From assembly GCF_964204645.1 (NCBI RefSeq), contig NC_134029.1:496001-560000 (forward strand): 64,000 nucleotides of DNA. Direction: 5' to 3'. Shown piece after piece: positions 30,401-59,886 of the stretch (positions are counted from its first letter, which is position 1; every line of letters begins with the position of its first letter). The notes beneath the pieces were generated by a model. The model was not told where the DNA came from and ran no database searches. It saw only the letters and a program-made list of their open reading frames with translations. Made by a program: the position numbers and the translations under genes. This stretch comes from Tubulanus polymorphus. Lineage: Eukaryota > Animalia > Nemertea.

Positions 30401-32572
30401 TTTGTGATGTTAAAGGAAAATCATCAGTACATGAAAGGCAATGATAGATACGAAGGATATCTGATAGACATGCTACAAGAGATTGCTGATATTATAGGAT
30501 TTCAATACGAGTTGTACGAAGTTCCTGATGGTAAATTTGGCAGCAAAGACGACAATGGAAACTGGAATGGAATCGTACAAGAGTTAATTACTGGAGTGAG
30601 TATGCAACATTTACATACACATAAATTTGGCTTTTGTTGGTAAAAATGGTATCAATTCAAGTTCATCTCTACCGCGGTGGCTGTAACCTTCGATCAATCA
30701 TCTCTTGGAATAATCATTCACCCCAAAGTTACTTACAGCAAAAATAAAGAGCTACAGGTCAAAATATATTCGCTGCGAGTAGGGTTCGAACCTACGCGGG
30801 AAGATCCCATTAGATTTCTAGTCTAACGCCTTAACCACTCGGCCATCGCAGCTTGTTGACCACTTGCCAAAGTTACCCATTTTGAACGTATTGACATGGC
30901 CACAGCTTGCGACATAGCGAATGGATTCGAAATTCGAGAGTGCGAATACTTGAAACAATCTCGTACGGCTCTCTCTTGTAATCCTGGCACAATTCATTGA
31001 ATAATATTTTCATATATTTCAGAACGCGACTATGTCTTTAGCTACGATGTCGATCTCAGTAGAGCGAGAACAGACGATCGACTTTACGAAACCGTTCGAG
31101 GATTTATACATTACGATCCTGTTACGTCGACCACAGAAAGAAAATTATCTTCTGCAGTTTCTAGATCCGTTACATTATCTAGTTTGGATACTGATTCTGG
31201 TGGCTTTGGTCGCAACGAGCGTTCTTATGCTTATCATTGATAAACTTGTGCCGAACAACGAGAACGACCCGGACGGACCCAGATACAATCTGAAGGAGAG
31301 CTTATGGTTCTTTTATGGTTCGTTGGTACAGGCCGGTGCGGAGACGACTCCTAAAACCTATTCCGGAAGGGTTCTAGGAAGTGCGTGGTGGTTCTTCTCG
31401 CTTATACTTATTTCATCGTACACGGCGAATCTTGCCGCATTTCTTACCGTCATCAAAATTTCGAGTCCGATCAAAGAAATTCCTGATCTTGGAAATCAAA
31501 ATAAAATCCGTTACGGCACGGTTAAGAACAGTCGCACGGCTGACTTCTTCAAGAAGTCAAACTCGGAGATTCTGCGAAAAATGTGGATCCAAATGTCGCA
31601 GGTTTATCCGGATAGTATGGTCGAGAATAGTAACGCTGGAATCGAGAAAGTACTCGATGAGAATTATGCATTTCTGTGGGATCTACCTGTGAATATGTAC
31701 ACGGCTACTAAACTATGTGATACTATGGTGGTCGGTGGTCCATTCGATAGGAAGCATTACGGTATAGGGGTACCTCGTGGCGCCGCCTATCGGGATGACC
31801 TTACTATGGCCATCTTGAAGCTGAATGAACGCGGCAAACTCAGCACTTTGAAGAAAAAGTAAGATTTTATCAATTGAGAGTTCGAATGTTTGGTTTTCGT
31901 CGGCATGTGTCATGTCTATCAGGCCAACAATTATGAAGAAAAACTAAGAGAGAGGTGACGTTTCGACTCAATTTAATGAGCCAATTCTTAAAAACATTTT
32001 TAAAACAGTTCTGAAAATAGCTCATCGAATTGACTCGAAGCTTCACTACTCCTCTTTAGGTTTTTCTTCATAATCACCGGTTTCTTCATCAACTCTATTA
32101 TAGACAATTACTAACGTGTCAACATTTACGATGTTTGTCTAAATTCTTGGAATTTTGATGTTATTTTTCACAGATGGTGGAGTACAAGTAAATGCGGCGA
32201 CCCGCGAGCAATAGAGTCAAGTAGTACAACTACAGAACTAGAAATAGGAAACGTTGCCGGTGTTTTTATCGTGTTGGCTTGTGGCGTTACGTTAGCGTTA
32301 CTTATATCATTGTTAGAACGAGCATTCTTACGTCTACGTCGCCAACGTAAACGCGGCAAAGATGGCGGAAAGATTAGTCCAACGAAATCAGTAAGTTTCA
32401 GTCCTGGTACATCAGACACCACTAAGGTTCTCGGTGATTTCTAGAGATGATCACTGATGTTCTTTATTCTAAATTTCAGAGTAAACTAATGAAAAGAACA
32501 ACTTCGTCTGATAGCGAGAATTACGTTACTGATATCTACGGAAATCTAATACCGCATGAAACTACTCTGTAA
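24491..32572 (+). CDS. Ionotropic glutamate receptor paralog 1 (delta/AKDF-like, with ATD)
   Basis: Signal exon 24491-24592; ATD exons about 25815-29995; S1 30392-30596; large exon 31023-31858 (YGSLVQAG, SYTANLAAF, YGTVKNSRT, FLWD); M4 exon 32174-32391; last exon 32480-32572 ending ETTL. Confidence 0.9.
25363..25436 (-). tRNA. tRNA-Ile(AAT) variant, in iGluR1 intron 1
   Basis: 74 nt, AAT anticodon. D-loop TC and T-stem GTGGG/CCCAC variant. Confidence 0.93.
28190..28263 (+). tRNA. tRNA-Ile(AAT), in iGluR1 intron
   Basis: Identical to 12882-12955. Confidence 0.95.
30771..30852 (-). tRNA. tRNA-Ser(AGA), in iGluR1 intron
   Basis: Same body as the CGA/TGA genes; anticodon arm TTAGA-CTAGAAA-TCTAA. 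Confidence 0.93.
31930..32074. mobile_element. Inverted pair of Penelope-type hammerhead-like ends (second family)
   Basis: Minus-strand left arm ...GGCTCA-TTAAAT-TGAGTC-GAAACGTC...TTTTTCTTCATAAT mirrors plus-strand right arm CTGAAAATAGCTCA-TCGAAT-TGACTC-GAAGC...TTTTTCTTCATAAT. Confidence 0.55.
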
Positions 32573-35275: not shown

Positions 35276-38200
35276 ATGGCGCCGGCTTCTGTGATATGTT
35301 TAATCGTTATGTTATTTCTTTGTTTTACTGGCAGTTTATCGGCTAATGACGCCATCGATGTGGGTAAGTTTTTTTCCCAGCAATGTTTTCAGGTTTCTTG
35401 ATGTGGCGATGAAGGGTTTGGAAAAACTATACGGGAACTCTTAAAACTTCATTCAGTTAATCTAACCACCAGTAAAGAGATACGCCTACTATTGCCTACT
35501 GGTCATCGATTTTTCATATAATTCAAGGAGAAACAAACTTAGCATATAAGGTTTATATCATCTCTACTGGTGAAGTCATAATACTTTGATAAACTTTGTG
35601 ACTGGTAAGAAATCTAACCCTATAAGTCGTCGACTTTTATGTGGATTTATAAGGCACCATTATTGATTGTAATTTGATTAGGTTTGGTTCAGAGAAGCGG
35701 AAGTGATGTCAAGTTCAGCGGTGATCTGATTGGTCAATTCCGATCATTAGTCGAAGAGGGACAAATTGAAAGTGAAAAGATACGTTTAACTCGCGTGGTA
35801 GTTCACATAGACTGGGGCCTCGAGCGACTCTTACAAGGTAAATAGGGCTTAACAAATTTTCTTCAAACCAAGAAAAGCTTGACGTGTCCAAAACATGATC
35901 ATGAACAATCCCATAATTGATGATATCTGAGTTGTTTATCTATCAAAAAATTTCGAGAAAATCTCGTTGAGAAAAACAGCAATGATTGCACCTTATGGTC
36001 TGTAGACTTAGAAAGACTCGCTATATTTAGCCAAAAAAGAACTATGGTGATCTCTACCTGCAAAACACACCTGATGAGATATCTATTATGGATGGAAAAG
36101 GTTTAGGTTTCCACACGATGAGTGTACGTATGTTTTGTAAGGTTTAGTTGTGACGATGATATCCTCTATTCACATGTAACGGGAGAAGGAAATATTGATT
36201 CTATACGTTTCATCACCGATGTAAACATCATCTCTCATAAATATAAAAGCTGAATTTATCAACCTGATTCAGACTCGATGCTGGCAGATATATCAATGAC
36301 CATTGTAACGAAACAGGGACCTCAAAAAACCCGTCATGATGATACATGATTCCCATCCACAGTAAACACACACACAGGACCAAACACAGTCATCAGTCTG
36401 TGTGCAATATTTATACAGAATGCTGTTAGATTTATCTGAAAGGTCCAATCATTATCAGACAAATACAAGTCCTGAAACACCTTCAGTCACTTGCAATATA
36501 AAATCACACCACAAAAAATGAAAAACGAGACCGAAATGTTTCCTATAGTTAACATTAGTTCAGTGAACATTTCGATTAGTACATCGTAACAGTGATATCT
36601 TTGAGGAAACATGTCACACTTTATTCTACAGGATCTTATATATTTTTACAAAACGGACTCAGATTGTTTCATCAATGTTTTAGGCTCCATCACCCTTTCC
36701 ATTACTTATTCATTATCACTAATATTTTCACGTTCCGACCATGTCCTGATAGTCATCTCCAGTCATACCATAAATATAAGCTCAACGAAACATCATGGAT
36801 TCTGTTTTCATTCTTAGTGCTCAGTAATATCGTTACAACACAGACTATCAGTGTTTCTATCAATGGTTTCTATCACGTTCTGGTTAAATATTATGTAGAT
36901 TTCATTTTCAGTTGTGGACGAAATGTTTGAACAAAACATTAGTTTAATCATAAGCGCAGAATCTGAGAAAAACTATCGCTACATCGCGCAAGAGTTACAG
37001 ATACCGTATTTAGTGTTAAGGGAACCAGTTACTGATGACGTCACTCCGTACATGTACACTATGTCTACTGTACATGCACATGTATTAGGAGAAGCCGCTG
37101 TTGATTTTATCCGCATGAGTAAATGGACAGAAATGACTGTTATCTATTCTGGAATAAAAGGTGATTTTACCAACGTTCCCTTTGACTAACTGGGAACTGT
37201 ATTTTAGACTCAGAGATGGTGATTTCTTCTTTAAAGGTCTGCAGATATTCGGTATATTGAGGACACATCTATTCGACTTGGACACCGAATACACGGAATA
37301 TGAATGGTTGATGAATTGGTCTTTGTTTAGAGATCGGTTACTGAAATTTCGGCGACAAAACCGTAGATTATTTGTCGTTATTTGCGAAAACGACAACTTA
37401 GAAATAATTCTAAAACAGGTAATAAATAACAGAACTCATCTGAGCAGAAGTGAAAGAAAATCCATGACTATAGGCTGCAGGAACGGCCCTGGGGCCAGGT
37501 GTTTAAAAGACTCAGACACGTGGCTATAAAAATTGAATTATAACCATTGTATTTAGCCGATTGATAACTTGAAACAATTTTGGAGCAAATGCCTCCTGAA
37601 CCAAAATATGTTGTACACGAAAAAACGTAAAATGATTTAAAACCGAATAAACGATTCTTATGATGATTAAGAAAAATTACCGGTTCAAACATTTGACATG
37701 ATATAGAATATTCGAGAATCTGCTATAGTAAAACTTTTGTAATTACTATCAAAACTTTATTTTTTTAGGCGTTAGAAGTGAGTCTTCTCGGGCATGGTTA
37801 TATTTGGCTTTTCATTTCCGAGGTAAGCGTATATGATAACATCGTCAGTAGAAATAACTCCAGTCTGTTGTTTTGACAAAGCTTCGGAATCCATAAAAAT
37901 GTCAGCGTTTTAAACTAATATTGTTCTTTCGATATCGAAGTAGCAATTCGTATTGCCGTCTAAAAGAACTATTAAAATGTCGTGAAGTGTTTGAGTGATA
38001 TTACGAAAGAACGGATTTCCATTAATCTCTGAGAGTCACTTGACGTGCGTAATGTTACTATTTCACTGAGCGTGAAGTAGTTCTTATGTTGAATGGTAAA
38101 AAAACTGAAAGCACTGTAAAAAGTACTGTTGACCTTGCTTGTGTGCGATTATGAAATCTAGAAAATACCAACGCAGAGAATTCCTTGAAATTCCTATACA

Positions 38201-41200
38201 TATACAGACCCCTCAACATATATAGATGTAATTCCTTCCAGACTGGTTTTCATTATTCTGATTGATTATAGCAACACGATATGCTTAGCTCTTATCCTGA
38301 ATTATAACCCAGGCATAAATCTAAGTTCCCTCCAGACCGAACAGATTTTTCGGATGGATCGTAAAAAATAACAAGAAGCTAAGGTTTTATCGTAGGTCTG
38401 AAACCAGTCTGTATTTTAAGCTAATAATTCGAGGCAGGTTTTAATGATAGAAATTCAAATCGTCCAAGTTCATCATATTGTTAAAATATACCGAACCAGA
38501 TGTTTTCAAGCTCTAACTGTCGACCTATTAGACTTCTAATTTTATATGAAGTAATTAATGCAGGTCTCAATTCGTTGACAACGGCCGGTTGACTCAGTAT
38601 ATAAGAATATATAAGTTGTTTTTGAACACGACTATCATATAACACTAAGAGAAGTTATCGGTTAACAATATCACGAAGGACACAGATTGTTTGCACCCAA
38701 TGAGTTGCAACACTTAATCAACCCTTTAGAAAATATCAATTTCAGGGACCAGGCTGTGGGTTTGTTTAATTTCAGGACCAGGCTGTGGGTATGTCTAATT
38801 TCAGGACCAGGCTGTGGGTATGTTAAATTTCAGGACCAGGCTGTGGGTATGTCTAATTACAGGACCAGGCTGTGGGTATGTTTAATTTCAGGATCAGGCT
38901 GTGGGTATGTCTAATTTCAGGACCAGGCTGTAGGTATGTTTAATTACAGGATCCGGCCGTTAGTAGGTTCGACTTCTCCGAATGGTTAGACACCGAAACA
39001 GAGTTTCTACTATTGACAACTAGTTCTTCCACTGACGATCGGATACCGCCTGATACCGAGAATCAAATCTATCGAGATACTCTGATACTTATCAATGATA
39101 CGATCAGTAATGCGCCGACCGACAGGTGTCGCCACAAGAAATGTAACCAACTGGGCAAGAGAATTCTACATTACATGAAGGCAAGGTTTCGCGCGTCTTA
39201 GAGTTGATCAGAATGAAAAAAAAACATAGTGAAACTGAAAACCGAAAACTGATATAGAAAATTCTCTTTTTGCAGACGTTGAAAAATTCTCCGTCGAAAT
39301 CTGCATCATCTACAAAATTGGTGACGTTCGACACTAGACACAGGCGTGATGACGTCACTCTTCACTTTATTGTTCTAACTAAAGAAGCATACAAAAAGGT
39401 AAACGAAATTGAAATCAAAAGTAAAATCAAAAGGAATATTTTAAATGGGGTTAACAGAGAGGGGATATGTTTAGGGGATAGAGTTTATTTATCATGAATG
39501 AATTAATTTAGGCTAGTTGCACAAAGTATGGTTTAGAAGACAAATTTAAGACCATCTTTGTTCTATATATATTTGTTCTAAAAGAACATTCTCAAAATGT
39601 TAGACCACGTTTAGACTATAATTCACGACTGTACAACTAGGGCCTGCAGGATTAAAGAATTCAGCCCCCAAAAAATTGAACCCGGTTTCGATTCCAATAA
39701 AGTAGTTGATCATTTTTCAGATAGGAATCTGGCGTCAGAACGGAGGGAAGTCAATGAATGAAAGACTCGAGTTACACTCGACATCGCTATTCGGTAAAAG
39801 TCATTTACTTGGAAGTAAGAAAAATCCTCTACGCGGACGAAAACTGAAAATTGTTACTTTACTGGTAAGAGTTACTTCAACATCTTTGACCATGATTGCA
39901 TTCATGAAAACATTTAATCATAATTTACTTAATGCATCTGATTGTAGGAATTCATGTAAACATGTATGAAATAAAACATAGAATCTTTTTAATTGTTTGT
40001 CTAATCGTTTTTGCTTTTTATTAGGAATCACCTTTTGTGATGTTAAAGAAAGGACATGAATTTATGTCTGGTAATGATAAATATGAAGGATATCTGATCG
40101 ATTTGATTCATCGTATCTCCGAGAATGTCGGATTTAAATACGAACTTTACGAAGTGGAGGACGGAAATTTCGGTTCTGTCGATAAAAACGGTACCTGGAA
40201 CGGATTAATGGCGGATGTTATCAAGAAGGTAAGCGAAATACCCGGAAAATGGGGATGTAATTTTGGGAATTATGTAGAGAAAATATTGTGAGAGAACGAT
40301 GGAATACTGTTGATCAACAAGCTGTCCTGGTCACCGCAGCTAAGTGGTCACCACAATGATCAGACAAACTTGCGAACTCGACAGGTCACTACTATGGTCT
40401 AGTGGTGAGCACGCTCAGCTGACATGCTGGAGGTAGCTGGTTCGAGTCCTGCTAGGGCGAACTCTTTTATCAGATCGGAGAATCCGTTTGCCTCCAATCG
40501 TACCCTTTTTTTGTTCACGTGACTTTTTGGAGTCTTCGAAACCTCCTTTCTGTCGAGGTGGTGTGATTCGGATTTTGTGTGGAGCCAACCGGAGATTTCG
40601 GACGGAGACTTCGGAGGTCATAATAGAGTACGCCCCTAGGGTTTCCGGCGATGTAGGTTTAGGTTTAGGAATAGAGATTACTGAGGGTCAGGGTTATGCA
40701 CAGAGGCTTAGGTGAATGTATTACCCAATTAGAGAATGCTTTCACTATCGAAATTTTAGTTTTTGAACAACAATTTTTCTTTTCATTATATTTGCAGAAA
40801 GCTCACATGGCATTAGCCTCTATAACCATCACTCGAGCTCGCGAACAAGCAGTAGACTTCACTAAACCGTTCAAAAGTGTCGACATCAATGTATTAATTC
40901 GTCGTCCCAGACACGAGAGTTCATTCCTACAGTTCCTCGAACCGTTTACTCCGGCAGTTTGGATCCTATTTCTGTGCGCCCTCTCCGGGGCTGCGCTCGT
41001 TCAATTCGCTATCGAGAAATTCACTGTCGATGCCGCACGGCAGGGGGAGCCACCAGTTAGTTTAAAGGATAGTCTATGGATGTATTATGCTAGTATCGTA
41101 AGTCAAGATTCGGGTAAATACCCGCAGGCAAACTCATCACGATCGATGACTTGTACCTGGTGGTTTTTTGGTTTGATGATTATTTCCGCTTACACGGCTA

Positions 41201-44200
41201 ACCTCGTATCGTTCCTAACCGTATCCAAGGCTAAACTAGCCATCGATGACGTCATAGATTTAGCTTCCCAAACCGATATCAAATACGGAAGTGTCCAGAA
41301 CAGTCGCACGGCGGATTTCTTTAGGTTGTCTCCGGATCCTGTATTCCGGGAAATGTGGAAAAGCATGAAAGATAACATGGTTAAAGGTACAAAGGCTGGT
41401 GTAGCGAAAGTGAAGTCACCTAAAGAGAAATACGCCTTTATTTGGGATTCCCAGGTAAAACAAAGCAATCTCTCCTTTCAATGATTTCTAAATAAATCCC
41501 CGTTTCTTCTATGAAAATAAACAAAAGTTCCCAATCGATAACAAAGAAGCTACAATGTAACTCATAACACGTGATGTTTTATTACGAGAAAATGACTAGG
41601 GAGATAACAGTTGAGCAACAGAAGACTCGTGAGGAAACATTCATTGTGAATATTATTGAAAACATAATCTGAATGTACATGTACATGTAATTTACTCGCA
41701 TTTTACAGATTAGACATTTCTAAAACTGAGTAAATTATGTTAGGTTTCTGAGAATTGATTTTCACTTCGCAGTCAACGATGATTTCATCCCTAACAAATG
41801 AAATGTTGAATATATCTCACTTACGAGAGATTTATCAATATCAAAACATACAGGCATCAGTTGCATACTATTCAACACGAATACCTTATTATGAAACAGT
41901 GGTGGATTTAGGGAAGGGGGGTCAGTAGCACCGGGGCACGTGCTGTCCCCTTCTGGATTCGTTATTGATTATTGCCCCAAGATTCCGGTCATATACAGGA
42001 AACTGTGTTCATCTTATTCTACAGGTAAATCTGTATTCAGCGACTCAGAATTGTGAAATGATGGTTGTTGGTCATCCTCTAGACGAGAAAAGATACGGGA
42101 TTCCTGTACCAATTGATGCTGAATACAGGGATGTTTTAACTTTAGCGATACTCGACTTACAATATAAGGGTTTCATCATGGAAACTGAACGCAAGTAAGT
42201 TATACTAAATTCTTTACCGAGTTTGTAGAGTTTGTTCACTGGATCTGTGGAAGATAGGATCACCCTAATTACATACAACAAAACAAACGCTTACACAATA
42301 TACATATTAAACTACAAGTAAACATTGTATTTCATTTGGTAAATATAAATTTAGTAACTTAGTATAAAGTAACCACATTAAACCACTCACTAACAGTAAA
42401 CATACAACAATTCGTGAGGATCAATCTTTACAATAAATGTACTACACACAAAATGTCTATAGTTGCCATGGTTTATTTGTAACTGATACAATTGAAGTTT
42501 ATTTCACTGAATTTCTACAGCGGATTTTCATACAGAAAAATTCACGAATTTCTCGTCCCAGTAAAAGATATATGTAGAAATTAACCGTATAATTAGAAAC
42601 TTGAAACTGATAGAATATTTCAAAGAGAAATTCCCTCAGCTCAATTGAGACTGGTAAAAATACAGTAATTGCGGAAGGAAGTGTAAATGTCGCAAATGCG
42701 AGTGAAACTGTTACGAGCATTATTGTCGTACGTTTTGTTTTTGTAGTTTTCTGATCGGACGAAACTATTTTTGAACCTCTGAATAATTGAATTATTATTA
42801 TAGAATTTGATGTAATAACCAACGATAATGGTAGAAAATATACGTGTACAACATATGTCATGAAAAATATGAATTGTTGAAATATCTCATAGTAACATCC
42901 GATACTATTAGAAAACTTCATAATCACTGCTGCATAAACACCAATTACAAATGCATTTATTACAAAAATAATCCCGATTGTGCAGCGGGCGAATTTCGGT
43001 GTACATATCAAACGAGATGTGAACGGGAAGAGCACAACTGCCGCACGTTCTAGAGATATCGCCACGATTAACCAAGCACTACTAGCACCCATAAAACCCA
43101 TCACAAATTCATAGATTTGACAATTGATCAGTGAATTCATGATGAATATAGGACCAGCGTTTAAATGCAAGAGAATAAACTGTAAAACAGGCATCAGTGT
43201 ATGACTGATACAGAACGCAAAGTCACTGAGAGATAAAACGATCAGATAGTTAGCGTAAGATAAACTGCGGAATCTACGACTTATCATTATCAGGAAAGTA
43301 GCTGAATTGCCAAATGCTCCTAACACGAACAAGATAAGCAGAATGACCATAGATACAGAACGGTAGATTCCAGACCTGTTCTCCACAGACATGAGTAATG
43401 AGTGACTGTTGTACGCGGGACCGATCTGCATCTGAGTAGAATTCATGATCATATGAAAAAATCTGTCTCCTGTTTGGAATTAAATGTGAAAAGAAATCCA
43501 AACATATAATAATCAAGTCATATTCATGGCAGCAGCTAATCGACATTTACTGGAGACGAAATTATTTACAACTTACAACAAGATTTACTCAGATTTGTTA
43601 GATGTTTATTGTGTAAAAATAAATATGTGTCTGAATCATATCTGCAAAGAAATAACTTTGAATTGTAAAATATCGACTGAGTTTGCTGTAAAATCGCGTT
43701 CGTGCAAAGCCGGTATTATCAGAATGTTACAGGTGTTACAGACGCGACAATTTAATCACATAATGATCGCATTTACTCGAAAACTGTCTAATGAATGGTA
43801 TGATTTATTAACAAGTAATTAATTTCCTGGGCCCAGTCTCTCTTACAGAAATCCAATATCTATCTATCTAGATTTTTGGGCCTTGGTTTCCTGAAGTTTC
43901 ATAAGTATTTTATCATATCTCGACAAACTCTCTTAAACACAGCTCCTAAACCTCTCGTTAAACATTACAAATAGCCATCCGATATTCTTTATTTTCTGTA
44001 TTTTCTGTATTTCGGTTTCGACTCATCATTAGTCACTGATACTCGATGATTATTTCATTGAATTTCTACAACAGATTTTCATGCAGAAATATTCACGTAT
44101 TTCTCGTCCCAGTAAAAGATAAATGTAAAAATTAATCACATAATTACTTATTTGCAATTGATAGAATATTTTATAGAGAAATTCCCTCAGCTCAATTGAC

Positions 44201-47200
44201 ATTGGAAGGAATACAGCTAGAGATGAAGGAAGCGTAAATGTCGCAAATGCGAGTGAAACTGTAACAAGCATTATCGTTGTACGTTTTGCTTTTGTAGTTT
44301 TCTTATCGGACGAAACTATTTTTGAACCTCTGAATAACTGAATTATTATTACAGAATTTGACGTTAGAATAAAAGATAAAGGTAGAAAATAACCGTAGAC
44401 AACAACAAAGTTGAAAAACTTAATTTGTTGAAATATTTCATAATAACAGCCAAAATACTGGTCAGAAAAATGAATCATAACAAACGAGGGAACACCTAAA
44501 ATCGAAGCGTGAGTTACGAATATAAACATAATTGTAAATCGGGCGAATCTCGGTGTACATATCAAACGAGATTTGAGAGGGAAGAGAACAACTGCCGCTC
44601 GTTCTAGAGATATCGCTACTAAAAACCAGACGCTGCTCGCGCCCATAGAATTCATAAGAGCTTCATAAATTCGACAAGTGATCAGTGAATTCATCAGGTA
44701 TATTGGATTGATGTTTGCGTACAAGAGAACAAACTGTAAAACAGGCATCAGTGTAAAAGTGATACAAACTAGAAAATCACTGACTGACAAAGCGATCAGA
44801 TAGTTAGCGTAAGATAAACTGCGGAATCTACGACTTATCATTATCAGGAAAGTAGCTGAATTTCCGAAGGCTCCTAACAGGAACAAAATGATCAGAATGA
44901 CCATAGATACAGAACGGTAGATTCCAGACTTGTTCTCCACCGACATGAGAATGATATACACGTACGATCGACCAACAGCCAGCGTCTCGGTTGTAGAATT
45001 CATGATTGAATCAATATTCTGTGTGTTTGTACTGACTCACAACACGCATATTGGAAAGTTATTCTGTAGTTCATGAAATCCGCACATATATTGATGAAGT
45101 CTCATTTGTGAAAGCTGGTTTTTAACCATTGTTAGAAATGACATCTTTTGTTGACCACGAATGGAAAAATCGATTCTCAGATTCAACACAATAAACTCAG
45201 ATTTGTGAATGCAGCTGCTGACGAAATTAAATCATCTTTTTTCAGATAACGTCCTTTTAATAAACATGATCCAATAGAAATAAGTGCTTTAACTGTAGCC
45301 ATTGGTCACCCAGAAATTCTTTGTTCGCACCAGTTTCACAAAAATGCGTTGAAATTTTGTCAGCATTGATTATATAGACGAATTCGGTCACGGTTCCATG
45401 AAATTTCATTACTATTATTCAACATTCCAATTTAGATTATAGTTGACGTTTGTTTCACGGAATTTCTACAACAGATTTTCGTACAGAAATATTCACGAAT
45501 TTCTCGTCCCAGTAAAAGGTATATGTAGAAATTGACGATATGATTACTTAATTCAAATTGAGTGAAAATTTCTATGAGAAATTCTTTCTGCCATGAGGAG
45601 CTTGGTAATAATACAGTTATAGTAGTTGGAAGTGTAAACATTGCAAATGCGAGTGAAACTGTTACGAGCATTATTGTCGTACGTTTTGATTTCGTAGTTT
45701 TCTGATCGGACGAAACTATTTTTGAACCTCTGAATAACTGAATTACTATAACAGAATTTGATAGAATTATGAAAGTTAAAGGTAGAATAAAAACGTATAT
45801 GACATACGTCATAAATAGTATGAACTGATCAAAAATATTGTAGTAACATCCGAAATCATCAGAAAATATCATTATTACTATATGGATGATACCGATAACA
45901 AGAAAATTAATTGTAGAAATTATCACAATAACACATCGAGCGAATGTCGGTGTACATATCAAACGTGATTTGAACGGGAAGAGAACAACTGCCGCACGTT
46001 CTAGAGATATCGCTACTATTAACCACGAACTATTGGCACCAGCAAATGATGTCAGAGATTCGTAAATTCGACAACTGATCAGTGAATTAATCATCAAAAT
46101 ACGACCGGTGTTTAGATGCAAGAGAACAAACTGTAAAACAGGCATTAAACTAAAACTTGTGCAAAACGTCAAATCACTGACTGACAAAACGATCAGATAG
46201 TTAGCGTAAGATAAACTGCGGAATCTACGACTTATCATTATCAGGAAAGATGCCGTATTTCCGAAGGCTCCTAAAAGAAATAAGATAATCAGAATGACCA
46301 TGGATACAGTACGGTAGATTCCAGACTTGCTTTCCAATGACATGAGAACGATGTAACTTTTGTAAGGTCGACCAACAATCGGCATCTGAGTGGAATTCAT
46401 GATTGATTCAGAGTCTAGTGTTCTCACTGACTCTCTCCTCACATATTGGAAAATAATTTGATGCGAAACTAATTCACATCGAATATTCATAAAGTCATAT
46501 TCAGCATTTGTTAGAGATAAAATAAGTTTATTCACCATGAAATTGAAAATCAATTCTCAGTAACTCAACATAATTTCTTCCGATTTGTAAAATGCTTACC
46601 TTGAAAAAACAATTCTAAAGTAAGGGAAATCCGCATTGATATCTATGAATTATTTTTTTTCTTTAAACAGCTCGTTCGTGATGAAATCTATCGCAAACCA
46701 AGAAATGAAAATCAATTCTCAGAAAAACGTACACAATGAATGCAGCTTGTAAATTAAATCATTATCTTCAGATAACGACATCATGAATATTTCATAAACA
46801 GAATCCTATGGTAATCAGTGCTTGAACAGAAGCCACAGGTCACCCAGAAATCTTTGTTAGCGACCTGTGCACGTAAACAGTGATGCATTTAATGTTCAGG
46901 ACAATTGTATCAAACAAATGATGGATGACTATCAAGAATTAGATTTCGTTATAGTATCTGTTAATTCACCAAAAATGTGAGAAAAAAGTCAGTGCAGAAA
47001 ATATGACACGATCATCCTGTACAAATCGATATTGAATACAGGGAAGTTAACTTAAGCGATAGATAGTTCAATCACTGGATCACCTCGTAATCATGACTAC
47101 AAACTTGTCGCACCATCGAGTATCATCAACATTTGCTAATTGAGCTCGTTATGGCCACTGGTCACTCATGACCTTAAGTAACTTAGTGTAGTTACTACAT

Positions 47201-50200
47201 TAAACCACCCACTAACAGTAAACATACAACAATTCGTAAAGATCAATCTTTACGATAAATGTATTACACACAAAATGTCTATCGTTTTCATCGTTTATTT
47301 GTAACCGATACAATTGAAGTTTATTTCACTGAATTTCTACAGATTTTCATGTAAAAAAATTCACGAATTTCTCGTCCTAGTAAAAGATATATATAGAAAT
47401 TAACCACATAATTAGAGGCTTGGAATTGATAGAATATTTCATACAGAATTTCGCTCAGCTCAATTGAGATTGGAAGGAATACAACTAGAGATGAAGGAAG
47501 CGTAAATGTCGCAAATGCGAGTGAAACTGTTACAAGCATTATTGTTGTACGTTTTGCTTTCGTAGTTTTCTGATCGGACGAAACTATTTTTGAACTTCTG
47601 AATAACTGAATTATTATTACAGAATTTGACGTTAGAATAAAAGATAAAGGTAGAAAATAAACGTAGATTACATATATCATAAAATATATGAATTGTTGAA
47701 ATATTTCATAGTAACATCCAAAACTATCAGAAAACATCATAATAATTACTGCATAAATACCAATTACCAATGCATTCATTACAAAAATAATCGCAATGAC
47801 ACTTCGGGCGAATTTCGGTGTACATATCAAACGAGATGTGAACGGGAAGAGAACAACTGCCGCACGTTCTAGAGATATCGCTACTATTAACCACGAACTA
47901 TTTGCACCCATAGAATTTATCACAAATTCGTAGATTTGACAATTGATCAGTGAATTCATCATGAATGTTGGACCGATGTTTAGATGCAAGAGAACAAACT
48001 GTAAAACAGGCATCAGTGTAAAACTGATGGAGAACATAAAATCACTGATAGACAAAGCGATCAGATAGTTAGCGTAAGATAAACTGCGGAATCTGCGACT
48101 TATCATTATCAGGAAAGTAGCTGAATTTCCGAAGGCTCCTAACAGGAACAAAATGATCATAATGGCCAAAGACACATTACGGTGGATGCCAGATTTGTTC
48201 TCAACAGACATAAGTAACAAATAACTGTTGTACGCAGGACCAATCTGCATCTGAGTAGAATTCATGATCACGTGAAAATACAAGTCTCCTGTTTGATATT
48301 AAATGTGAAAAGAACTCCAAACAGTTATTCACAAAGTCGTATTTATGGCAGCAGCTTAAACAACAATAGTTTGAGATGAATTAATGTATCTGAACTGTGC
48401 ACAAAGTGAAAATCTATTCTTAGAAACATGACACAAATTACTCAGTTTGTAGAATTTATTTCGTAAAATATGGATCTACCCAAACACCCAGCTAACGATG
48501 ATTGTACAGCACAGTTGACAGTAGACATTCTTCTGACAGTAGACACCCGTCGGAATTCGTGCTATCTTCACTGACAAATAGGGTCTTGCTATTTGTGGAG
48601 GATATGGCATATACAAGCATGAATATGTAGTCTCGCTATATTTTCTGTTGCAAAAAATATTTTGCAACATGTGAAACATATGCATCAAACCCTGGACTCT
48701 CTTAGAGTCCATAATCAAAGTATTCTTACATGTGAAATCCAAATCAAGAACAAATCGGTTTGGAAAATAAACGAATGCAACTTCATCAGTGTATCTTATC
48801 AGCCCGCTCTAAACAAATGCGCCTCTTGTCATTGATCGGGATTTTCCGTGAGGACATCGCATAATCGAAAAGTTTATAAACTATATTTATTAAATTCTAT
48901 ACTTCTTTATTCTATAGTTATTAAATTCAAGTATAAATATAACAATTAATACTAAACTGCAAAATTAACTTACCTGATTATAACACAAAATGTCCATGAT
49001 TATCTCTTTTCATTTGTATGTTATACTCATATTCAATTAGTATATTTACTCAACAGTTATTTCACTGAATTTCTACAACAGATTTTCGTGTAGAAATATT
49101 CACGAATTTCTCGTCAAAGTAAAATATACATATAAAAGTTGACAACATAGACTGACCGCAGTCCGGTCTAATATAACATCCTAATTCTTTTTGAAGGTGG
49201 TGGGCAGTTGGTGAATGTGGAGACCCTACTAAAGTACAGGCTGATACAGAAATGCGCCCCCTGACGGCGGATACATTAGCAGGGTTGTTTGTTATGTTGG
49301 GAGGAGGAATTATTCTAGCTTTGATCATTTCCGTGATCGAGTACAAAAAAGCACGTGACATCAGAGGAAATGTCGAGGTGGCTTCAGAGAAGGTAAGACA
49401 ACTCCCGATATTCCACCGTCCCATTTACCGCCACCCCCGCCTACCGCCAGGTTTTCTCAATGTACATCTCTATACAAATACATAGTAAAACATCACCGAC
49501 ATACCGCCATACTCTCTATACCGCCAAAATCATTCTGCACCGATGTGGGCCTGCGGTCGGGGGTTGACTGTTTATGTATGAAGGAACTTGGGATTTCTTA
49601 CACGCCATAATTACCAGACATTCGTGACGTCAGTTACGTAATTCAAATCTCCGTAATTGTCTTAAAACTTTTACTGATACAAGTCATAACATCAGTCTCT
49701 GTATTGAATGTGCAAAAATCTATTTCTTTCGAAATCAGAAAAATGGAAACCACAGAACCTAAAGTAACCTCAGTACCCATAGAACCCTCAGTGCCCATAG
49801 AACTCACAGAACCCATATAACCTAATGCATATACAGCCAATGATGAATATATTCACAATCGAATCCTACAAATGTTCATTAGATTCACTTTATTTTTTGT
49901 TTGGGTCTCTGCTAGGATATAAGCATATAGATTTATTTTCCATACGTATATCGGGTTTTCTTTATACACGTAATGGAGTTAGTTGATAGTGTTATCGAAG
50001 TTCTGTAAGATGATACTATCACGACTAAACATCACGATTACCCCCGTTTAATAGTGTTACCAGAAATAACCGAAGAAAATAGTTCCTATAGTTTTAGAAC
50101 CGTATCGTTTTACACACTCTAGTCCCATCTCAAATACAAAACCACTCTAGAAATCAATCATACGTTTATCCTGCTAATGCATTTCTGTTAATAATAAGAG

Positions 50201-50583
50201 TTGTAATGAGTATAAATAAAAGAGGAGTTATGAGTGCTCGCGTTGTTGCTAGAAATTCGATTAGTTCATCAGCTCAATAGTGTCTGAATTCAATAATAGC
50301 GAAAACCTAACGTAAAGGTCATAGATGACGGTCTATATGACGCATGCACCCATGGATTTTAGTCTTCCTGATGTCAAATCCTTAATATCAGGTTTAAAAT
50401 CTTACAATTTAAAAGTTGTAGAAATTATGCATCTTCATATTCTCAGCGATGGTTAAACCTGCTGTATGTATCAGCGATCGTTACAACTATATAAATCCTA
50501 TATATTTACAGAATACAAAGCCACCAGTAACAACTGAAGACCATGAACTCGAGGAAAAATGCAAATTAAAATTTCATGAGTAA
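35276..50583 (+). CDS. Ionotropic glutamate receptor paralog 2 (divergent pore/gate)
   Basis: Signal exon 35276-35363; ATD exons 35682-39864; S1 40025-40228; 40798-41454; 42025-42194; M4 exon 49197-49391; probable last exon 50512-50583 (less certain). Exon phases match paralogs 1 and 3 where checked. Confidence 0.85.
38738..38970 (+). repeat. 29-bp tandem repeat derived from an intron-exon junction (7 copies plus the true junction)
   Basis: Unit AATTTCAG-GACCAGGCTGTGG-GTATGTCT. The last copy is the real acceptor TTACAG|GATCCGGCCGTT at 38950. Confidence 0.9.
40388..40460 (+). pseudogene. tRNA-like pseudogene / SINE head in iGluR2 intron
   Basis: A box TGGTCTAGTGG and B box GGTTCGAGTCC at tRNA spacing; acceptor stem broken; GAC-containing loop. 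Confidence 0.55.
42499..43452 (-). CDS. Intronless chemoreceptor-like class A GPCR, copy 1 (nested in iGluR2 intron)
   Basis: 317 aa, 7 TM, GN in TM1, LSLSD, SLERA, NFYIY. Confidence 0.92.
   Translation of the reverse strand: MIMNSTQMQIGPAYNSHSLLMSVENRSGIYRSVSMVILLILFVLGAFGNSATFLIMISRRFRSLSYANYLIVLSLSDFAFCISHTLMPVLQFILLHLNAGPIFIMNSLINCQIYEFVMGFMGASSAWLIVAISLERAAVVLFPFTSRLICTPKFARCTIGIIFVINAFVIGVYAAVIMKFSNSIGCYYEIFQQFIFFMTYVVHVYFLPLSLVITSNSIIIIQLFRGSKIVSSDQKTTKTKRTTIMLVTVSLAFATFTLPSAITVFLPVSIELREFLFEIFYQFQVSNYTVNFYIYLLLGREIREFFCMKIRCRNSVK
44050..45003 (-). CDS. Intronless GPCR, copy 2 (nested)
   Basis: 317 aa paralog with the same motifs. Confidence 0.92.
   Translation of the reverse strand: MNSTTETLAVGRSYVYIILMSVENKSGIYRSVSMVILIILFLLGAFGNSATFLIMISRRFRSLSYANYLIALSVSDFLVCITFTLMPVLQFVLLYANINPIYLMNSLITCRIYEALMNSMGASSVWFLVAISLERAAVVLFPLKSRLICTPRFARFTIMFIFVTHASILGVPSFVMIHFSDQYFGCYYEIFQQIKFFNFVVVYGYFLPLSFILTSNSVIIIQLFRGSKIVSSDKKTTKAKRTTIMLVTVSLAFATFTLPSSLAVFLPMSIELREFLYKIFYQLQISNYVINFYIYLLLGREIREYFCMKICCRNSMK
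45432..46400 (-). CDS. Intronless GPCR, copy 3 (nested)
   Basis: Start set at the conserved MNST; the ORF track extends further upstream. Confidence 0.9.
   Translation of the reverse strand: MNSTQMPIVGRPYKSYIVLMSLESKSGIYRTVSMVILIILFLLGAFGNTASFLIMISRRFRSLSYANYLIVLSVSDLTFCTSFSLMPVLQFVLLHLNTGRILMINSLISCRIYESLTSFAGANSSWLIVAISLERAAVVLFPFKSRLICTPTFARCVIVIISTINFLVIGIIHIVIMIFSDDFGCYYNIFDQFILFMTYVIYVFILPLTFIILSNSVIVIQLFRGSKIVSSDQKTTKSKRTTIMLVTVSLAFAMFTLPTTITVLLPSSSWQKEFLIEIFTQFELSNHIVNFYIYLLLGREIREYFCTKICCRNSVKQTSTII
47321..48265 (-). CDS. Intronless GPCR, copy 4 (nested)
   Basis: Start at MNSTQMQ; flanks shared with copy 1. Confidence 0.92.
   Translation of the reverse strand: MNSTQMQIGPAYNSYLLLMSVENKSGIHRNVSLAIMIILFLLGAFGNSATFLIMISRRFRSLSYANYLIALSISDFMFSISFTLMPVLQFVLLHLNIGPTFMMNSLINCQIYEFVINSMGANSSWLIVAISLERAAVVLFPFTSRLICTPKFARSVIAIIFVMNALVIGIYAVIIMMFSDSFGCYYEIFQQFIYFMIYVIYVYFLPLSFILTSNSVIIIQLFRSSKIVSSDQKTTKAKRTTIMLVTVSLAFATFTLPSSLVVFLPISIELSEILYEIFYQFQASNYVVNFYIYLLLGREIREFFYMKICRNSVK
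49057..49152 (-). pseudogene. 3'-end remnant of a fifth nested GPCR
   Basis: Translates VYVVNFYMYILL*REIREYFYTKICCRNSVK*, with an in-frame stop replacing the conserved G. Confidence 0.85.
49395..49570. mobile_element. Degenerate MITE with repeated TACCGCC motifs
   Basis: Four TACCGCC copies; the right end CGGGGGTTGACTG is inversely related to the left end CAACTCCCG. Confidence 0.45.
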
Positions 50584-52801: not shown

Positions 52802-55800
52802 ATGGCCTTTTGTGTTCGAGTCATCGTGTTAGTAGGGGTTATCCTACTATGCTGCCACCTTGTGACAGCATGTACAGTTGTTGTCGGTGAGTAACTGTGA
52901 AAATATATAATTCTTATTTTGTTGCTGCATTGATATCTGATATCTTCAAATTGCCATCAAAAGACCAATAGCCCAAAGGTTGGTTAGTAGATATATCCAT
53001 CGTTAAGAATGGTCTTTTGATTATCAACTATCCACTGATTACCTCTATCGAACCTGTTAAGCAATTGATCCCGTTATCCTGGTACTAAATTCTTCTTAGG
53101 AAAAATTCTACGTTTTTTGTTCATAGGAATTTATCAGTTAGACCATTATGATAATCTGTTGATAAGCACGCGGGAAGCGTTCCACGCGAAAGCGCAACAG
53201 ACGCGAATCGGTTTCGATATGTCGTTTAAATCTTTTCAAGTGAATTCAACGGCAAATTCGTATGAGGAAATGTTCAGACGTAAGTAACGATAAATTTTCA
53301 AACTAAACGGAAACAAAACAAGTTTGTTACGGATTGTTTAAAGGGGAAAGTAAAATGTGTTGCGTAATTTTTCACAGCCCTTTAGATGTTTTTCAGAAAT
53401 AACGGGCCGAAATAACTTATCCATGAGTGAACCTTCAATTCATGCGACATGTCATTCATCGCTTTGAATATTTCACTGTAGTATTGGTATTTTGTTTCTC
53501 AGTTCGTGGTGAGTTCATAGTCAGCGGTGTTACAGTCGTTATTGGACCCTACAACTCGTATCTAGATGGTGCCGCCAGTCATCTCAATATTCCATATATA
53601 GTCACAGATAGCGTGCCTATACAGGCGGAGGGATACGACAATACTATAGTGGCGCTACTTCCATCTCAGAAGCATATGGTACATATGGCTTATGACGTAT
53701 CACACAAATATCACTGGAGTAATATAGCTATTCTTTACGAGCATCCGATTGGTAAGAGCCTTTTCTGTACATTGAATACTGCACAGGCCCATCTTTACAT
53801 CTTTACGTTACGCTAATTAGACAAATCTAATTTGCATAAAAGTCTCTAGTGCAAAGAAGTTGTCGGTTAGATTTAAAATTAGATCGTCTGCTCAATTCTG
53901 TTCAGGGATTCATGAAATCATGAGCATTTCATTATTTATTGTTTTAGGCGTTCCGTTTATTGAGAAATTCGTACAATATACAACAATGCGCGTTTACACG
54001 TGGAAGATGCGTGGCTCCATCTCACGACAAGAATTGAAACGAGATCTGATGGAGCTGCGCACGGAGACGGTCCGTCATATTCTCGTGGCCTGTAGCGTTA
54101 ACCTTACTGAACGCATCTTCCAAGAGGTGATTCAAACTTCATTACGATTAATTAGAGGGCTTATACTGTAAATCTGTTTGATCATATACTGATGAATTGG
54201 ACTGACGTCGCTGGGTCACAGTTGACGGTCATTTGACGTCCAAGATGACGTAGGTCACCTACTGGCGAATAGTGCATCCAATCTAATGAAAACAGAACAC
54301 TTTGCATACCAAATATTTTGAAAAAAATGAATGAAAAATCTAAAATCTTTACATATGTCAATTACAACGCGGGAGGGCGTCCTGGGTGTTGTATCAATGT
54401 GGCTGTTACGTTTTGCTCTTCGGAGAAAAACCGTTTATTCAAAGTGTGAAAATAATGATAATGTTTGGTATTTTAATTCAGGCTCTGAAATTGAGTATGT
54501 TATCCGAGAATTTCCAGTGGTTAATTCCATCAGTAGTGAGTAAATATACGAAATTCCCGCACACTAAAAATAAAATCCGAAATGTTTCCTCGAATAAGCT
54601 GTAATTTATCAGAGTTTCGAATATCTCTTAATACATCATCAGGATTATAGTGTGAAGTATTCCTGAAAATGGCCATTAGGATGTAGGTCAAATATTGAAT
54701 GAATTATTTGCTCGAGGAAACATTTCGTTCTTTTTATTCTTATTGTGCAGGGATTTTCTTTAACCGTCTCAACGCAGTCTCAGAGTGTTTCATTAATGGT
54801 TAAAAAGCTCTTTCAATTTTCAGGACCCACACCACATCGATACGCGGCCATTTGAATACACGGGTGTGAACTTCACAATCGGGCAAATCACCGATGAGAA
54901 GGATTACCAGGCTAAATACAACGCCACCTATATGTTGAAAGCGGCTGCGCAAGATGCAGTTACCATAGTAACCCATGCGACATCTAACTCATTGATACGT
55001 AGTGATACATGCCCGCGGCGTGGCAAGGCATTTTATCGCGAACTCATCGCCGTAAGAAATAGTTCCCAAGTCGATCTTGTCATAAAGTAATGAATAAAGT
55101 AAGATTGTATTGGATTTTGTTTTACAGTTTAGAGGAGTCGGGTCATTGGGACGGTATGAATTCGATAAGGATGGATTACGAACAGACTATACCGTTACAT
55201 TGGATGGACTCACTGATAAGGGACTAAAAAAGGTTTGAATTCTATTTGTAGTGGGTTTAGTGGATTTTTTTAAGGGAAAAGCCAAGAAATATTAAAATGG
55301 TATTTGTTTTTGTAGATAGGTTCGTGGAAACGTGTGAAACAGAATTCGATAGATTTACACCGAGCTATGCTTCAATCTGGACCCAACATTCCATCGAATT
55401 CATATCCACTCGGTAAAGAGACGGTCAGAGCTGTGACGATCATCGTAAGTGCCCCTCGAACCGATCAGATTCACACTCCATTCCTAACAGACTCGTAACA
55501 TAGATATTTCAATTTCACTTCAGGAGCCGCCATTTGTCGATTTCGTTCCCGGATATGAAAATCTGACCGGAAATGCCCGTTTCCAGGGTTATTCTATCGA
55601 TTTATTGAACGAAATTGCGAAACTGTTAAATTTCAAGTATGAGTTGTACTTAGTCGAAGATGGTCAATTCGGCATTAAAACAGCGAGCGGTGAATGGAAC
55701 GGAATCGTTGGCGAATTATTGAAAGGGGTAACAAATAGTATTATATATTTCAATAATCTGCGCGTTCGGTCGAGTATCAGTTGAAATGTTTTCATTTAAA

Positions 55801-57674
55801 GCAAGAGTCAAGAATTGTGAACCTAATATTGATAAATTTGCCAATATTTATCAAAGACTTGCCTTCGATTGAATTAACACAAGCAAACTGTCAGACTAAA
55901 ACTAAGACTAATTAACGATGTTTACATTTTTTAGGTTTAACTGAACAACTGTTTAATTCAGCACATTTTTCTATTTTTGTTTGAACGGCTGAGATGTCAA
56001 TTTCTAGTTCAGAAAATTTTATCAAAGTATCAATTTTTTTCTTCATAGCTTCACAGCTGTTTAATTCGGCATATTTCCCCTCGAATCGTTTCTACATTTT
56101 TGTTTGAATTGCTTAGACGTAAATGTTAAAAAGAAAAGTTGAACATCTTTCCAATGTTTATTTGTTTCTATTTTCAGAACGCGTCTCTGGCCGGGGCTCC
56201 GTTAACTATCAACGTACAGCGAGAAGAAGTTATCGATTTTTCCAAACCATTTAAAACAATCGGAATCAGCATCCTTATCAAACGACCGCAAGACAACGTA
56301 TCATACTTTCAATTCATGCTTCCGTTATCCGTCAACGTTTGGATGTTGATAATCATAGCGTTAGCGTTCGTCAGCGTTATAATGGTTGTCATAGATACGA
56401 TTTATCCGGCTACTGATGGCTCCGTCAGGTTCAATATTAAAGAAAGTTTATGGTTCAATTACGGCGCTTTGGTTCAAGCCGGAACTGAGAATCTACCGCG
56501 AACTATTTCAGGGCGGATGCTGGCGAGCACGTGGTGGTTTTTCTCGCTGATCATTATATCGTCTTATACGGCGAATCTTGCGGCTTTCTTAACCGTGAGT
56601 AAATTCAACACTCCGATCAGTTCTGTAGCCGACCTAGCCGCGCAGACCGAAGTTAAATACGGCACCGTTTGGAACAGTCAAGTTATGTCGTTTTTTGAGA
56701 ACAGTAAAATTGAACATTTCAAACGCATGTGGGCCTACATGTCGACAACGAACCCTCAATCGATGGCGATGACGTCACAGGAAGCGTTCGAGAAAGTGGC
56801 GAACTCTAGCGGCGATTACGCGTTTCTCTGGGATTCCCCAGTCGTGAAATATAAAACCACCCAAGACTGTAGAATGATAGAAGTAGGTCACGCGTTCGAT
56901 TCGAAAGGCTACGGTATAGGGGTACCTCCTGGTGCCCCCTATCGGGATTCGTTAACGATGGCTATACTGCATCTCAACGAGAAGGGAGTTCTTCAAAGAC
57001 TCGATGAGAAGTAAGCACAATGCCTTAGAATTTCGTAGACTTCCGTTATGCAAATTAGCTAATTTGAATATTTGATTGACAGGTGGTGGCGTGATACGAA
57101 ATGTGCAGATGAGAATAACAAGTCGGCGACAACTCAACACACAGCTTTATCGTTGAATATGGTGGCTGGAGTTTTCTTCTTTTTACTCGGAGGAACTGCT
57201 TTATCCGTAGCCGTAGGAGTTATGGAATGGCTAATGAACCGTAGGCGAAAGGTATGAATCGCTCTTCTCCTCTTCCTTCCATCTCCCTATTAGACGGGAG
57301 TGGATTATAGTATATCTCATACGATAATGCTTGATGTACTTTGCACAGAGTGATGGTCGTTTCTTGTAACGAATACGAATATTTATTACACTCCAACCAT
57401 TCCCATGGTATATGGAGGAAAAACAGTATTTACAATTATTTACATAAACAGTAGATAACGTTATCAATGCATAAGCGCCTTCTGGCGGTCAAAGTCTGAA
57501 TCAGAATACTCGTTGAACCCGATTGTTGTATATTTTCAGCGCAATGATCCGAAAAATGAGATGAAGAGAATGAGTAGCACAACAAACCACGAAGAACCAG
57601 TTCTTCTTCGCGACCCGTTTACTGCCATTAAAAACCACGCAACGCTGAACGATAATAAAAATGTTCATATCTAA
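52802..57674 (+). CDS. Ionotropic glutamate receptor paralog 3 (delta/AKDF-like)
   Basis: Signal exon 52802-52886; ATD 53127-55444; S1 55524-55728; 56178-57010 (YGALVQAG, SYTANLAAF, YGTVWNSQV, FLWDS); M4 57083-57251; last exon 57540-57674. Probable 5' UTR exon ends at 51910. Confidence 0.9.
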
Positions 57675-58609
57675 AAACACCGAACTCTTCGGCATCACCG
57701 TGTTACACTGTGTCGCCATCTCTCGGTAGAATTTAACATTTTATGCATATTAATTCGTCATTGATTTTGTTTTTTCTTTTTATATTTTGTGCTATTTTAA
57801 TAGTCGATGAATAAATTCTTGTTTGTTTTAAAGAAAAAGAAGCAAATTGTTTAGTCGCCGTAATCGATCTTTAGATTCACTACAGTTTGGAAGACACTTG
57901 AAAATAGAATAAGAAAAATATAGAAAAAAATAATAATAAAACAAATAAGAAATTTATAGAATAAACGAATATTGAAATATTTCACTGATCTCGACCGATA
58001 TTTGTATTCACTGATTTTATCTCATTATTAAAATGATTAGGCACGAATTGCTGTTATATTGATTGACAGATAGCGGTTATTAAAGTCAAGTGGCAATAGA
58101 CACAAATATTAAGATATATATCAGTTCTATATCTAACTCATTCGTAAACGTATAATTTTGTTCTCGCTAGGAATATATCATCGATTTCACAAACAGTAAG
58201 ATAAGATTTAGAACCAATTTCTACTTAAGAGAATTGTAAGTATCTAATTCCGATGAAAATAATTTCCAAATAAAATAAATCGATTGATAGGTGTTTTATT
58301 TGAATTTGAATTGATATGCCGATCGTAGATAATTTCCCGATCATGGACGATTACATCATTGTGTCAGATCACACACAATCCAGCATGAGGCAAAATGCTC
58401 GCAACATTTTTTGCCAAAAAGTAATTCCTTGATCGATTTAAAATAAACTGAATTAATGAAGTGAGAATGAAAATAGATTTTGCTAGAGTTTGTATGAAAT
58501 CTTGTTCGTTTTACCATGGACTGCTAAAACGTTTTAGAGTCCATGGTTCTTCAGCCATTCTGATAACTAACCGCCAGTCTCAAACATTTCAAGACAACTC
58601 GTTGAATCA

Positions 58610-59342
58610 ATGTCACGACTGTTAAACATGATGCAGGTTGGTTTCAAACAGTGACTAATGACGTGTGCGTTATTTTTAGATGCAGTCATCCAGGTCAAAC
58701 GATCCTTATTCGTCGGTATCGAAAGTCAATCAACGAATACAACGAAACTTCGAACGAACGCAGCAATTACTCGAAACAAAACGACTCGAACGTGAACATA
58801 AACTAGCCAGACAACGAGAGATGTTCATTACTAAATACACGTGTCCTTTTCCTAATAGCGATCTGTGTAAATGTCCTATACACAACATTCCGAAAAGAAG
58901 AACGTATTCAAATCGATCCGTCGATGAACTCTCATCTGCCCGGAAGTTGGCGTATAAACTTCCGGTTGTGAATGGTATCAAAATGGCCGATGTTGACAGA
59001 AAATTTGAAAGCGGTCAAAACCGCAGCAGCAGCAGCATCAGCAGCAGCGAGAGGCTGAAAACACTGGACTTGCACGAGTCAAATTCATCCCTGCGTGATC
59101 TCAATGAGGGTTCTCAGAAACCGTCTACTGGTACCTCGACTGTCGTTAATATTCTGGGTCCATGTAGGCGGCGCTCTAGTAGCATGTACGTTCCTCATAT
59201 GTTTATCATGGAAGAAGAAAATGAAGATTTCTCCGATATTAAGAATGAAAAGATGGACATAGAAATTTATAACAAAACGAAGCCACGAAGAAGAAGATAT
59301 TCATTCGACGTAACGACAAGGCCTTTCAACAGTGAAATATAA
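58610..59342 (+). CDS. Uncharacterised ~220-229 aa basic/Ser-rich protein
   Basis: 220-codon ORF in AT-rich DNA, preceded by a TTTTTAG acceptor. Possible micro first exon 58610-58636. Coiled-coil-like segment and CP..C.CP.H cluster. Confidence 0.6.
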
Positions 59343-59886
59343 CAATTCAAGAAAAAACATAGAATTTATTGGAATTATCGGATTGATTTGAGAATCTGGT
59401 ATTCTGTAGTTAAAAAGATGATACAAATATATCTAAACCAATATCATGACCCACTAGGTTTTTTGGAAAACGAACTTTGTGTTATATTTTCAGTTTTTAT
59501 GTTTGATTCAGTAGATTTTATAATATATATTTCATCATGGGTTGAATACTTTGTATTCACAATTCTGAACTTCAATTCAGTTATATTCTATACAATATGC
59601 GTTTCAGAAAATCTGAATAAATTGTGTAATATGAGAAAATGTATCTTTGCTTTGTTCAAACAATGAATTTCGAGTAAAATTCGACTTCATTTAATGTATC
59701 CGTGAGTGCAATAGTTTTACCAACTAAAAGCAGTCAGTGCAAACAACATTGGTCGATTCTATATGTTGATTAGTTTAACAAACTCTCTGATGAATGCTGA
59801 ATAGCTGTCGCTATTAAGATGTCATTCATTACTAACCGTGTAGATATCGTTTGCCAGAATGTGACGAAACACTGATTGAATCAAAC

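Follow-up and report, generated by a model that had tools for sequence, protein, structure and literature searches.

An antisense array of intronless class-A G-protein-coupled receptor genes within an intron of an ionotropic glutamate receptor gene of the nemertean Tubulanus polymorphus

Genes that lie within an intron of another gene account for approximately 6% of the genes of Drosophila melanogaster (PMC3786989), and clusters of related genes nested in one host intron are likewise known and common: in insects, the TipE/Teh cluster occupies the last intron of CG18675, and GMC oxidoreductases occupy an intron of flotillin-2. For such clusters, the correlation between host and guest expression is generally poor (PMC3240667). 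Lineage-specific expansions of G-protein-coupled receptors (GPCRs) belonging to class A have been published for Lophotrochozoa including Nemertea, with ∼2,352 class-A genes in Notospermus, 1,904 of which are lineage-specific, and a chemosensory role has been proposed, but not shown, for these receptors (PMC11886862). Here, we describe a stretch of 64,000 nucleotides from the nemertean Tubulanus polymorphus (the window; C5:496001–560000 of a 268 Mb assembly, from which all positions below are counted unless a contig is given), in which an array of intronless GPCR genes is nested on the opposite strand within a single 7.0 kb intron of an ionotropic glutamate receptor (iGluR) gene.

The array resembles the nested intronic genes described previously (PMC3786989, PMC3192792) in that the guests are located wholly within an intron of the host and on the opposite strand, although here the arrangement is known from sequence alone. 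As in the TipE/Teh and GMC nests (PMC3240667), several paralogs occupy a single intron of an unrelated host, with local duplication within the intron. However, the insect nests are ancient and are conserved across insects, whereas the T. polymorphus nest is young, with a synonymous divergence (dS) of 0.3–0.6 between copies, and is probably species- or genus-specific; moreover, unlike in the insect nests, an exon of the host was duplicated together with the guests and left a pseudo-exon behind. The GPCR family itself is comparable to the lophotrochozoan class-A expansions in forming tandem arrays, in numbering hundreds to thousands of copies and in having no close relatives outside its lineage, the close hits being to T. 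polymorphus proteins only. The published study covers Notospermus and Lineus, not Tubulanus, and mentions neither introns nor nesting (PMC11886862); a further difference is that the T. polymorphus family seems to be nearly all absent from RefSeq: when public proteins were searched for homologues of one of the nested receptors (G2, see below), no more than two close relatives within the family came up, and these are T. polymorphus proteins.

The window contains three tandem iGluR paralogs, all on the + strand: paralog 1 (∼29948–32569; RefSeq XP_074650307.1), paralog 2, which is the host (37061–50583; XP_074650203.1, named `glutamate receptor 4-like', with 696 amino acids in 11 coding exons), and paralog 3 (54932–59339; XP_074650207.1). 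The three models, which map exactly onto the window, are RefSeq proteins of this palaeonemertean, and a database GPCR attributed to T. polymorphus is 100% identical to a site in the genome. The paralogs share 40–52% amino-acid identity, paralog 2 being the most divergent (40–45%). All three have a common phase 2 intron with GT..AG ends. It separates the S2 lobe from M4 and interrupts the Lys codon directly ahead of a WW..C motif, between the second and third bases of that codon. This intron, which lies on the + strand in each case, is 315 bp long in paralog 1 (31859–32173), 7,002 bp in paralog 2 (42195–49196) and 72 bp in paralog 3 (57011–57082), in exact agreement with the lengths and phase given in an earlier reading of the stretch made from its letters (the sequence-only reading). 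The 7,002 bp intron is approximately six times as long as the second-largest intron of the host gene, with GPCR coding sequence making up ∼55% of its length.

Exon mapping places the host S2 exon at 42022–42194 (+), ending in ..ETER and the AA of the split Lys codon with the donor GTAAGT at 42195, and the host M4 exon at 49197–49392 (+), which carries the WW..ECGD motif, the conserved cysteine of the ligand-binding domain, the M4 helix and the donor GTAAGA. The RefSeq model XP_074650203.1 joins 42194 to 49197 exactly (..ETERK|WWAVGECGD..), and four unrelated full-length iGluRs can be aligned across the same junction. The M4 exon is a 62-codon open frame that can be aligned with its counterparts in paralogs 1 and 3 as well as with GluK3. 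A second WW..C (M4-like) exon was sought on the + strand of the 7 kb intron and none was found, and an Rfam scan of this intron gave no matches. The host protein matches the Pfam families PF10613 (Lig_chan-Glu_bd; E 1e-37, 129 bits against a cut-off of 30) and PF00060 (Lig_chan; E 2.5e-28, 99.2 bits against a cut-off of 30.8), and it takes the M4 exon to make the latter profile (positions 3–146 of 146) whole. Among solved structures, GluK3 (PDB entry 7vm2, E 2.4e-90) matches best, aligned over residues 157–654, and the host is an AMPA/kainate-type receptor with the order S1–M1–M3–S2–M4.

Four of the guests are intact and intronless, and all lie on the − strand: G1 (42499–43452, 317 amino acids), G2 (44050–45003, 317 amino acids), G3 (45432–46400, 322 amino acids when counted from the family's usual ATG, with an MNST start) and G4 (47321–48265, 314 amino acids). 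The fifth, also on the − strand, is a remnant consisting of the last 33 codons and the stop (49057–49155), with 76% identity over 33 amino acids by tblastn and 83–89% by blastn to the 3′ ends of all other copies, and it stops 41 bp short of the host acceptor. G1–G4 match the 7tm_1 profile (PF00001) from position 8 to position 260 of 260 with 57.9–69.9 bits against a cut-off of 30.5 and E values from 1e-15 to 3e-19 (1.5e-15 for G1 and 3.1e-19 for G2), and the four intact intronless receptors and fifth remnant on the opposite strand of the sequence-only reading are thereby borne out. The guests and their conserved flanks cover ∼42317–48480 and 49057–49155, wholly in the intron and with zero overlap with host exons. 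A 62-codon M4 exon and four open frames of ∼317 codons in DNA of 34–37% G+C are far beyond chance.

The pairwise protein identity of G1–G4 is 68–82%. All copies have L-E-R-A at the DRY position and N-F-Y-I-Y at the NPxxY position, such that the Arg is kept and the Tyr of DRY and the Pro of NPxxY are not. A crude hydropathy scan of the guests gave six strong clusters and a weaker region around the motif of the seventh transmembrane segment, and N-x-S/T sequons are located at residues 2–4 and ∼23–25. Among solved receptors, those for peptides and amines come closest (E ∼1e-8), and the nematode Srw, Srx and Srsx profiles score 17.7–21.9 bits on the nested copies, below their cut-offs of 22.2–24.1. 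The description of the guests as chemoreceptor-like, with which the locus had been introduced, is thus not borne out by these profiles, and `chemosensory' is, for the nested receptors, a label by analogy only, the analogy being with large lineage-specific expansions (PMC11886862).

The duplication history of the nest can be traced in some detail, as G1–G4 form a local clade of seven members together with three intact copies, U1–U3, on the + strand 22–27 kb before the window start. In the tree, the group of six copies without G3 has a support of 89/91, and the full group of seven, with G3 included, has 81/25. U1–U3 are followed by a copy of the host S2 exon on the − strand (S2′), the whole (C5:468797–474162, window positions −27204 to −21915) forming an inverted mirror of the nest 64 kb upstream. 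S2′ adjoins U3 in inverted orientation and has both splice sites, with 98% identity to the host over 248 bp and 100% over the exon. A second, decayed copy of the S2 exon lies within the intron itself (46996–47061, +), between G3 and G4 and just past the 3′ end of G4; it matches 42086–42150 by blastn with 79% identity over 68 bp (E 5e-8) and reads ..PVQIDIEYREVNL.. followed by a stop. The spacer at 47102–47173 and the 3′ flank at 47174–47322 also match the S2–GPCR units, in the same way as the segment joining S2 to G1. Therefore, a unit composed of the S2 exon and an antisense GPCR was duplicated in place, and the GPCR therefore already adjoined the S2 exon when the duplications occurred. In total, the S2/GPCR junction is seen three times, in the host and in two further copies of the unit. 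The iGluR triplication, with its 40–52% amino-acid identity, is far older than the nest.

Among the local copies the ratio of nonsynonymous to synonymous divergence (dN/dS) is 0.26–0.52 at a dS of 0.27–0.57, and the nested coding sequences are therefore under moderate purifying selection. A 5′ flank of ∼250 bp is conserved throughout the local clade, and a 3′ flank of ∼130 bp with an AATAAA ∼22 nucleotides past the stop is common to five of the seven copies (G1, G4 and U1–U3). The GPCR units therefore look like self-contained genes, and each guest is probably transcribed as a small unit of its own. The conserved 5′ motif was also considered as a promoter element of the whole family; nine members from other parts of the genome lack it, and it was assigned to the local duplication unit only. 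Another candidate that was set aside is an uninterrupted ancestral exon, suggested by a 79-residue match of S2′ that extends into the preceding exon, as the DNA alignment is homologous only over the 173 bp exon and short flanks. The GPCRs beside S2′ differ by 12–18%, and the presence of a 100% identical exon next to them points to a possible recent gene conversion of the 248 bp tract.

Searches of the genome with two family members returned 1,848 and 1,966 first-look candidates. The 125–126 matches that were scored all have E < 1e-118 and 62–76% identity, are nearly all open and lie on contigs C1–C12 and C40, mostly in tandem clusters. In the sequence-only reading, the channel gene was proposed as the site of the receptor family's expansion. 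This stands for the local duplication within the intron, as attested by the S2 pseudo-exon, but not for the family, since only the seven-member clade is concerned, three members of which are upstream, whereas the family has ∼1,850–1,970 candidates genome-wide, including copies downstream of paralog 3. One of the latter is intact (59887–60840, +), lies outside the host and belongs to a different subclade, with ∼60% identity to G1–G4 and a position on the sister branch to the local clade; the copy, taken as 59851–60840, passes the Srw and Srx profiles, unlike the nested copies. Further GPCR pieces are located at 61007–61651 and 62773–62937. Elsewhere, three copies of one GPCR (LOC141914234) at C12:6519527–6566610 are 99–100% identical and ∼23 kb apart, which indicates a putative, very recent segmental triplication.

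On this evidence, we consider it probable that the nested array is an accident of family density and duplication in place, without functional coupling. A single member of the family, which is very large, lineage-specific and made up of intronless class-A GPCR genes, would have come to lie antisense in a short S2–M4 intron, where unequal or segmental duplication would then have multiplied it in place. At least one duplication would have taken the host S2 exon along, and that copy would later have decayed. The intron, at first only a few hundred bases long, would have reached 7.0 kb. The S2 exon and three GPCRs may also have given rise to an inverted duplicate 64 kb upstream. For the host, if still intact as its exons suggest, transcription would have to pass through the whole array and splicing would have to join 42194 to 49197. 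That a GPCR array should share a locus with an iGluR is most likely an accident that stems from the density of the family in this genome, and not a functional coupling. With ∼1,900 copies in ∼500 clusters and ∼25 iGluR loci covering ∼0.14% of the genome, the number of clusters expected by chance inside an iGluR gene is of the order of 0.7, which is a rough estimate and not a test. No iGluR locus that was listed lies within 20 kb of a listed GPCR, in a comparison of coordinates made by eye, which carries little weight as the lists hold only ∼10% of the family.

Several points weigh against this reading. The splicing of the host from 42194 to 49197 is predicted from a computed RefSeq model and from homology. 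The branching within the local clade is not settled, and the order of the duplications is a reconstruction. The comparison with chance, by which a single cluster within any of the ∼25 iGluR genes is about what is expected, is itself a rough estimate. GPCR copies lie on either side of the iGluR cluster, a layout that might point to something beyond chance. Finally, none of G1–G4 was found in a public collection of 15 billion proteins, from which the intact copy at 59887–60840 is also absent.

The first alternative to be weighed is that the array broke paralog 2, such that the host is dead or truncated, the M4 exon is an unspliced relic and the RefSeq model is an artefact driven by homology. The divergence of paralog 2 from its sisters would be in keeping with this, as would its altered pore loop and gate, with Ser at the Q/R position and the gate sequence AYTANLVSF, and its short N-terminal region, which is only weakly ANF_receptor-like (residues 53–107, 16.8 bits against a cut-off of 25.4, E 0.0036). 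The part of the model before S1 comprises ∼250 amino acids and shows no obvious signal peptide. However, when XP_074650203.1 is mapped to the window all 11 of its exons are open, with 100% identity block by block and canonical splice sites, and its RefSeq name carries no `low quality' flag. The M4 exon retains the KWW, the conserved cysteine and a hydrophobic helix. In the GluK3 alignment the ligand-binding triad is also retained, with the Thr and Arg in S1 (..SITITRARE..) and an acidic residue in S2 (..FIWDSQ..), which is Asp in the host and Glu in GluK3, and both cysteines of the pair matching that of GluK3 are kept, one on either side of the nest. The host is similar to AMPA/kainate receptors in its S1–M1–M3–S2–M4 order, its Arg/Thr/acidic triad, its cysteine pair and its SYTANLAAF-like gate, and differs from them in the Ser at the Q/R site, the Asp in place of Glu in S2, the short N-terminal region with its weak resemblance to ANF_receptor and an additional intron within the M3–S2 exon. 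The FIWDS of the host S2 lobe is NMDA-like. Furthermore, over the period in which the S2 duplicate in the intron decayed to a remnant with a stop, the real S2 exon has remained intact, suggesting that selection acted on the host once the nest had formed. A dead host is regarded as unlikely.

A functional coupling of host and guests, as was put forward in the sequence-only reading, would take one of two forms: either a shared chromatin domain co-regulates them, or sense/antisense interference makes them mutually exclusive, with the same sensory cells choosing between ionotropic and metabotropic reception. It is in accord with such coupling that all five guests are antisense to the host, that GPCR copies flank the host region, that nested genes can cause transcriptional interference (PMC3192792) and that both gene classes are plausible sensory receptors. 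Nevertheless, the family has ∼1,900 candidate copies distributed among all large contigs, the iGluR triplication is old and the nest, at a dS of 0.3–0.6, is young by comparison, the sister paralogs keep introns of 72 and 315 bp, and published nested clusters usually show poor or no correlation between host and guests (PMC3240667). With one cluster at about the chance expectation, the proposed link between metabotropic and ionotropic sensing finds no support here, and coupling is considered quite improbable. Very improbable, too, is the specific form in which the array would be more than a passenger and would act through interference or a shared chromatin switch, such that activating a nested receptor shuts off or co-activates the glutamate-gated channel.

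An assembly artefact, in which a GPCR array from elsewhere was misjoined between the S2 and M4 exons (a chimera that had been named in advance as fatal to the nest), might be suspected for a family that is highly repetitive and hard to assemble and that has a near-identical inverted copy of the S2 exon 64 kb away, but is extremely improbable, as the window contains no N and thus no gaps on a 24.9 Mb contig, the copies differ by 12–20% in DNA, which is ample for unique assembly, the S2/GPCR junction is found three times independently, its recurrence in two further copies of the unit arguing against a chimera at that end, and the remnant abuts the host acceptor without a break.

If the nest arose through family density and duplication in place, the locus provides a clean and well-dated example of a proliferating gene family that swells a host intron more than 20-fold and drags a host exon along. 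Nearly the whole intronless GPCR family seems to be missing from the T. polymorphus RefSeq annotation, and a receptor census based on RefSeq proteins would miss a family of nearly two thousand candidate copies. Should the expression of host and guests prove to be connected, transcriptional interference between two classes of sensory receptor could be studied at this locus in a natural experiment, although nothing here points in that direction, and if interference between array and channel were true it would constitute a hard-wired genomic link of metabotropic and ionotropic chemosensing.

The additional intron of the host is 564 bp long (41458–42021, phase 0) and splits an M3–S2 exon that is unbroken in paralogs 1 and 3. 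Its start, GTAAAA, is a near-repeat of the start of the next exon, GTAAAT, and at 41700–41800 it contains a piece of the 5′ flank of the local GPCR clade in + orientation. This intron may represent an intron gain linked to the GPCR units. Exons resembling the amino-terminal domain are present at 27704–27958, 29491–29586 and 53523–54601, upstream of the points at which the RefSeq models of paralogs 1 and 3 begin, and these public models (465 and 781 amino acids, respectively) are probably truncated at the 5′ end.

Eight tRNA genes, for Ser and Ile only, are scattered over the first half of the window, including those at 30771–30852 (−) and 28190–28264 (+). A tRNA-Ser(AGA) gene lies inside the intron of paralog 1 between the S1 exon and the M1–S2 exon, and paralog 1 therefore also hosts a nested gene. 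Between the GPCR pieces downstream of paralog 3, a 76 bp tandem repeat with a tRNA-like GGGTTCGAACCC box extends over 61928–62409 (6.3 copies, 89% identity). The last part of the window (63546–64000) is taken up by a tandem array that is rich in purines (GGAGG/GAGGG) and repeats with periods of 75 and 197 bp; it accounts for the GC skew of 0.32 in this segment and continues past the window end.

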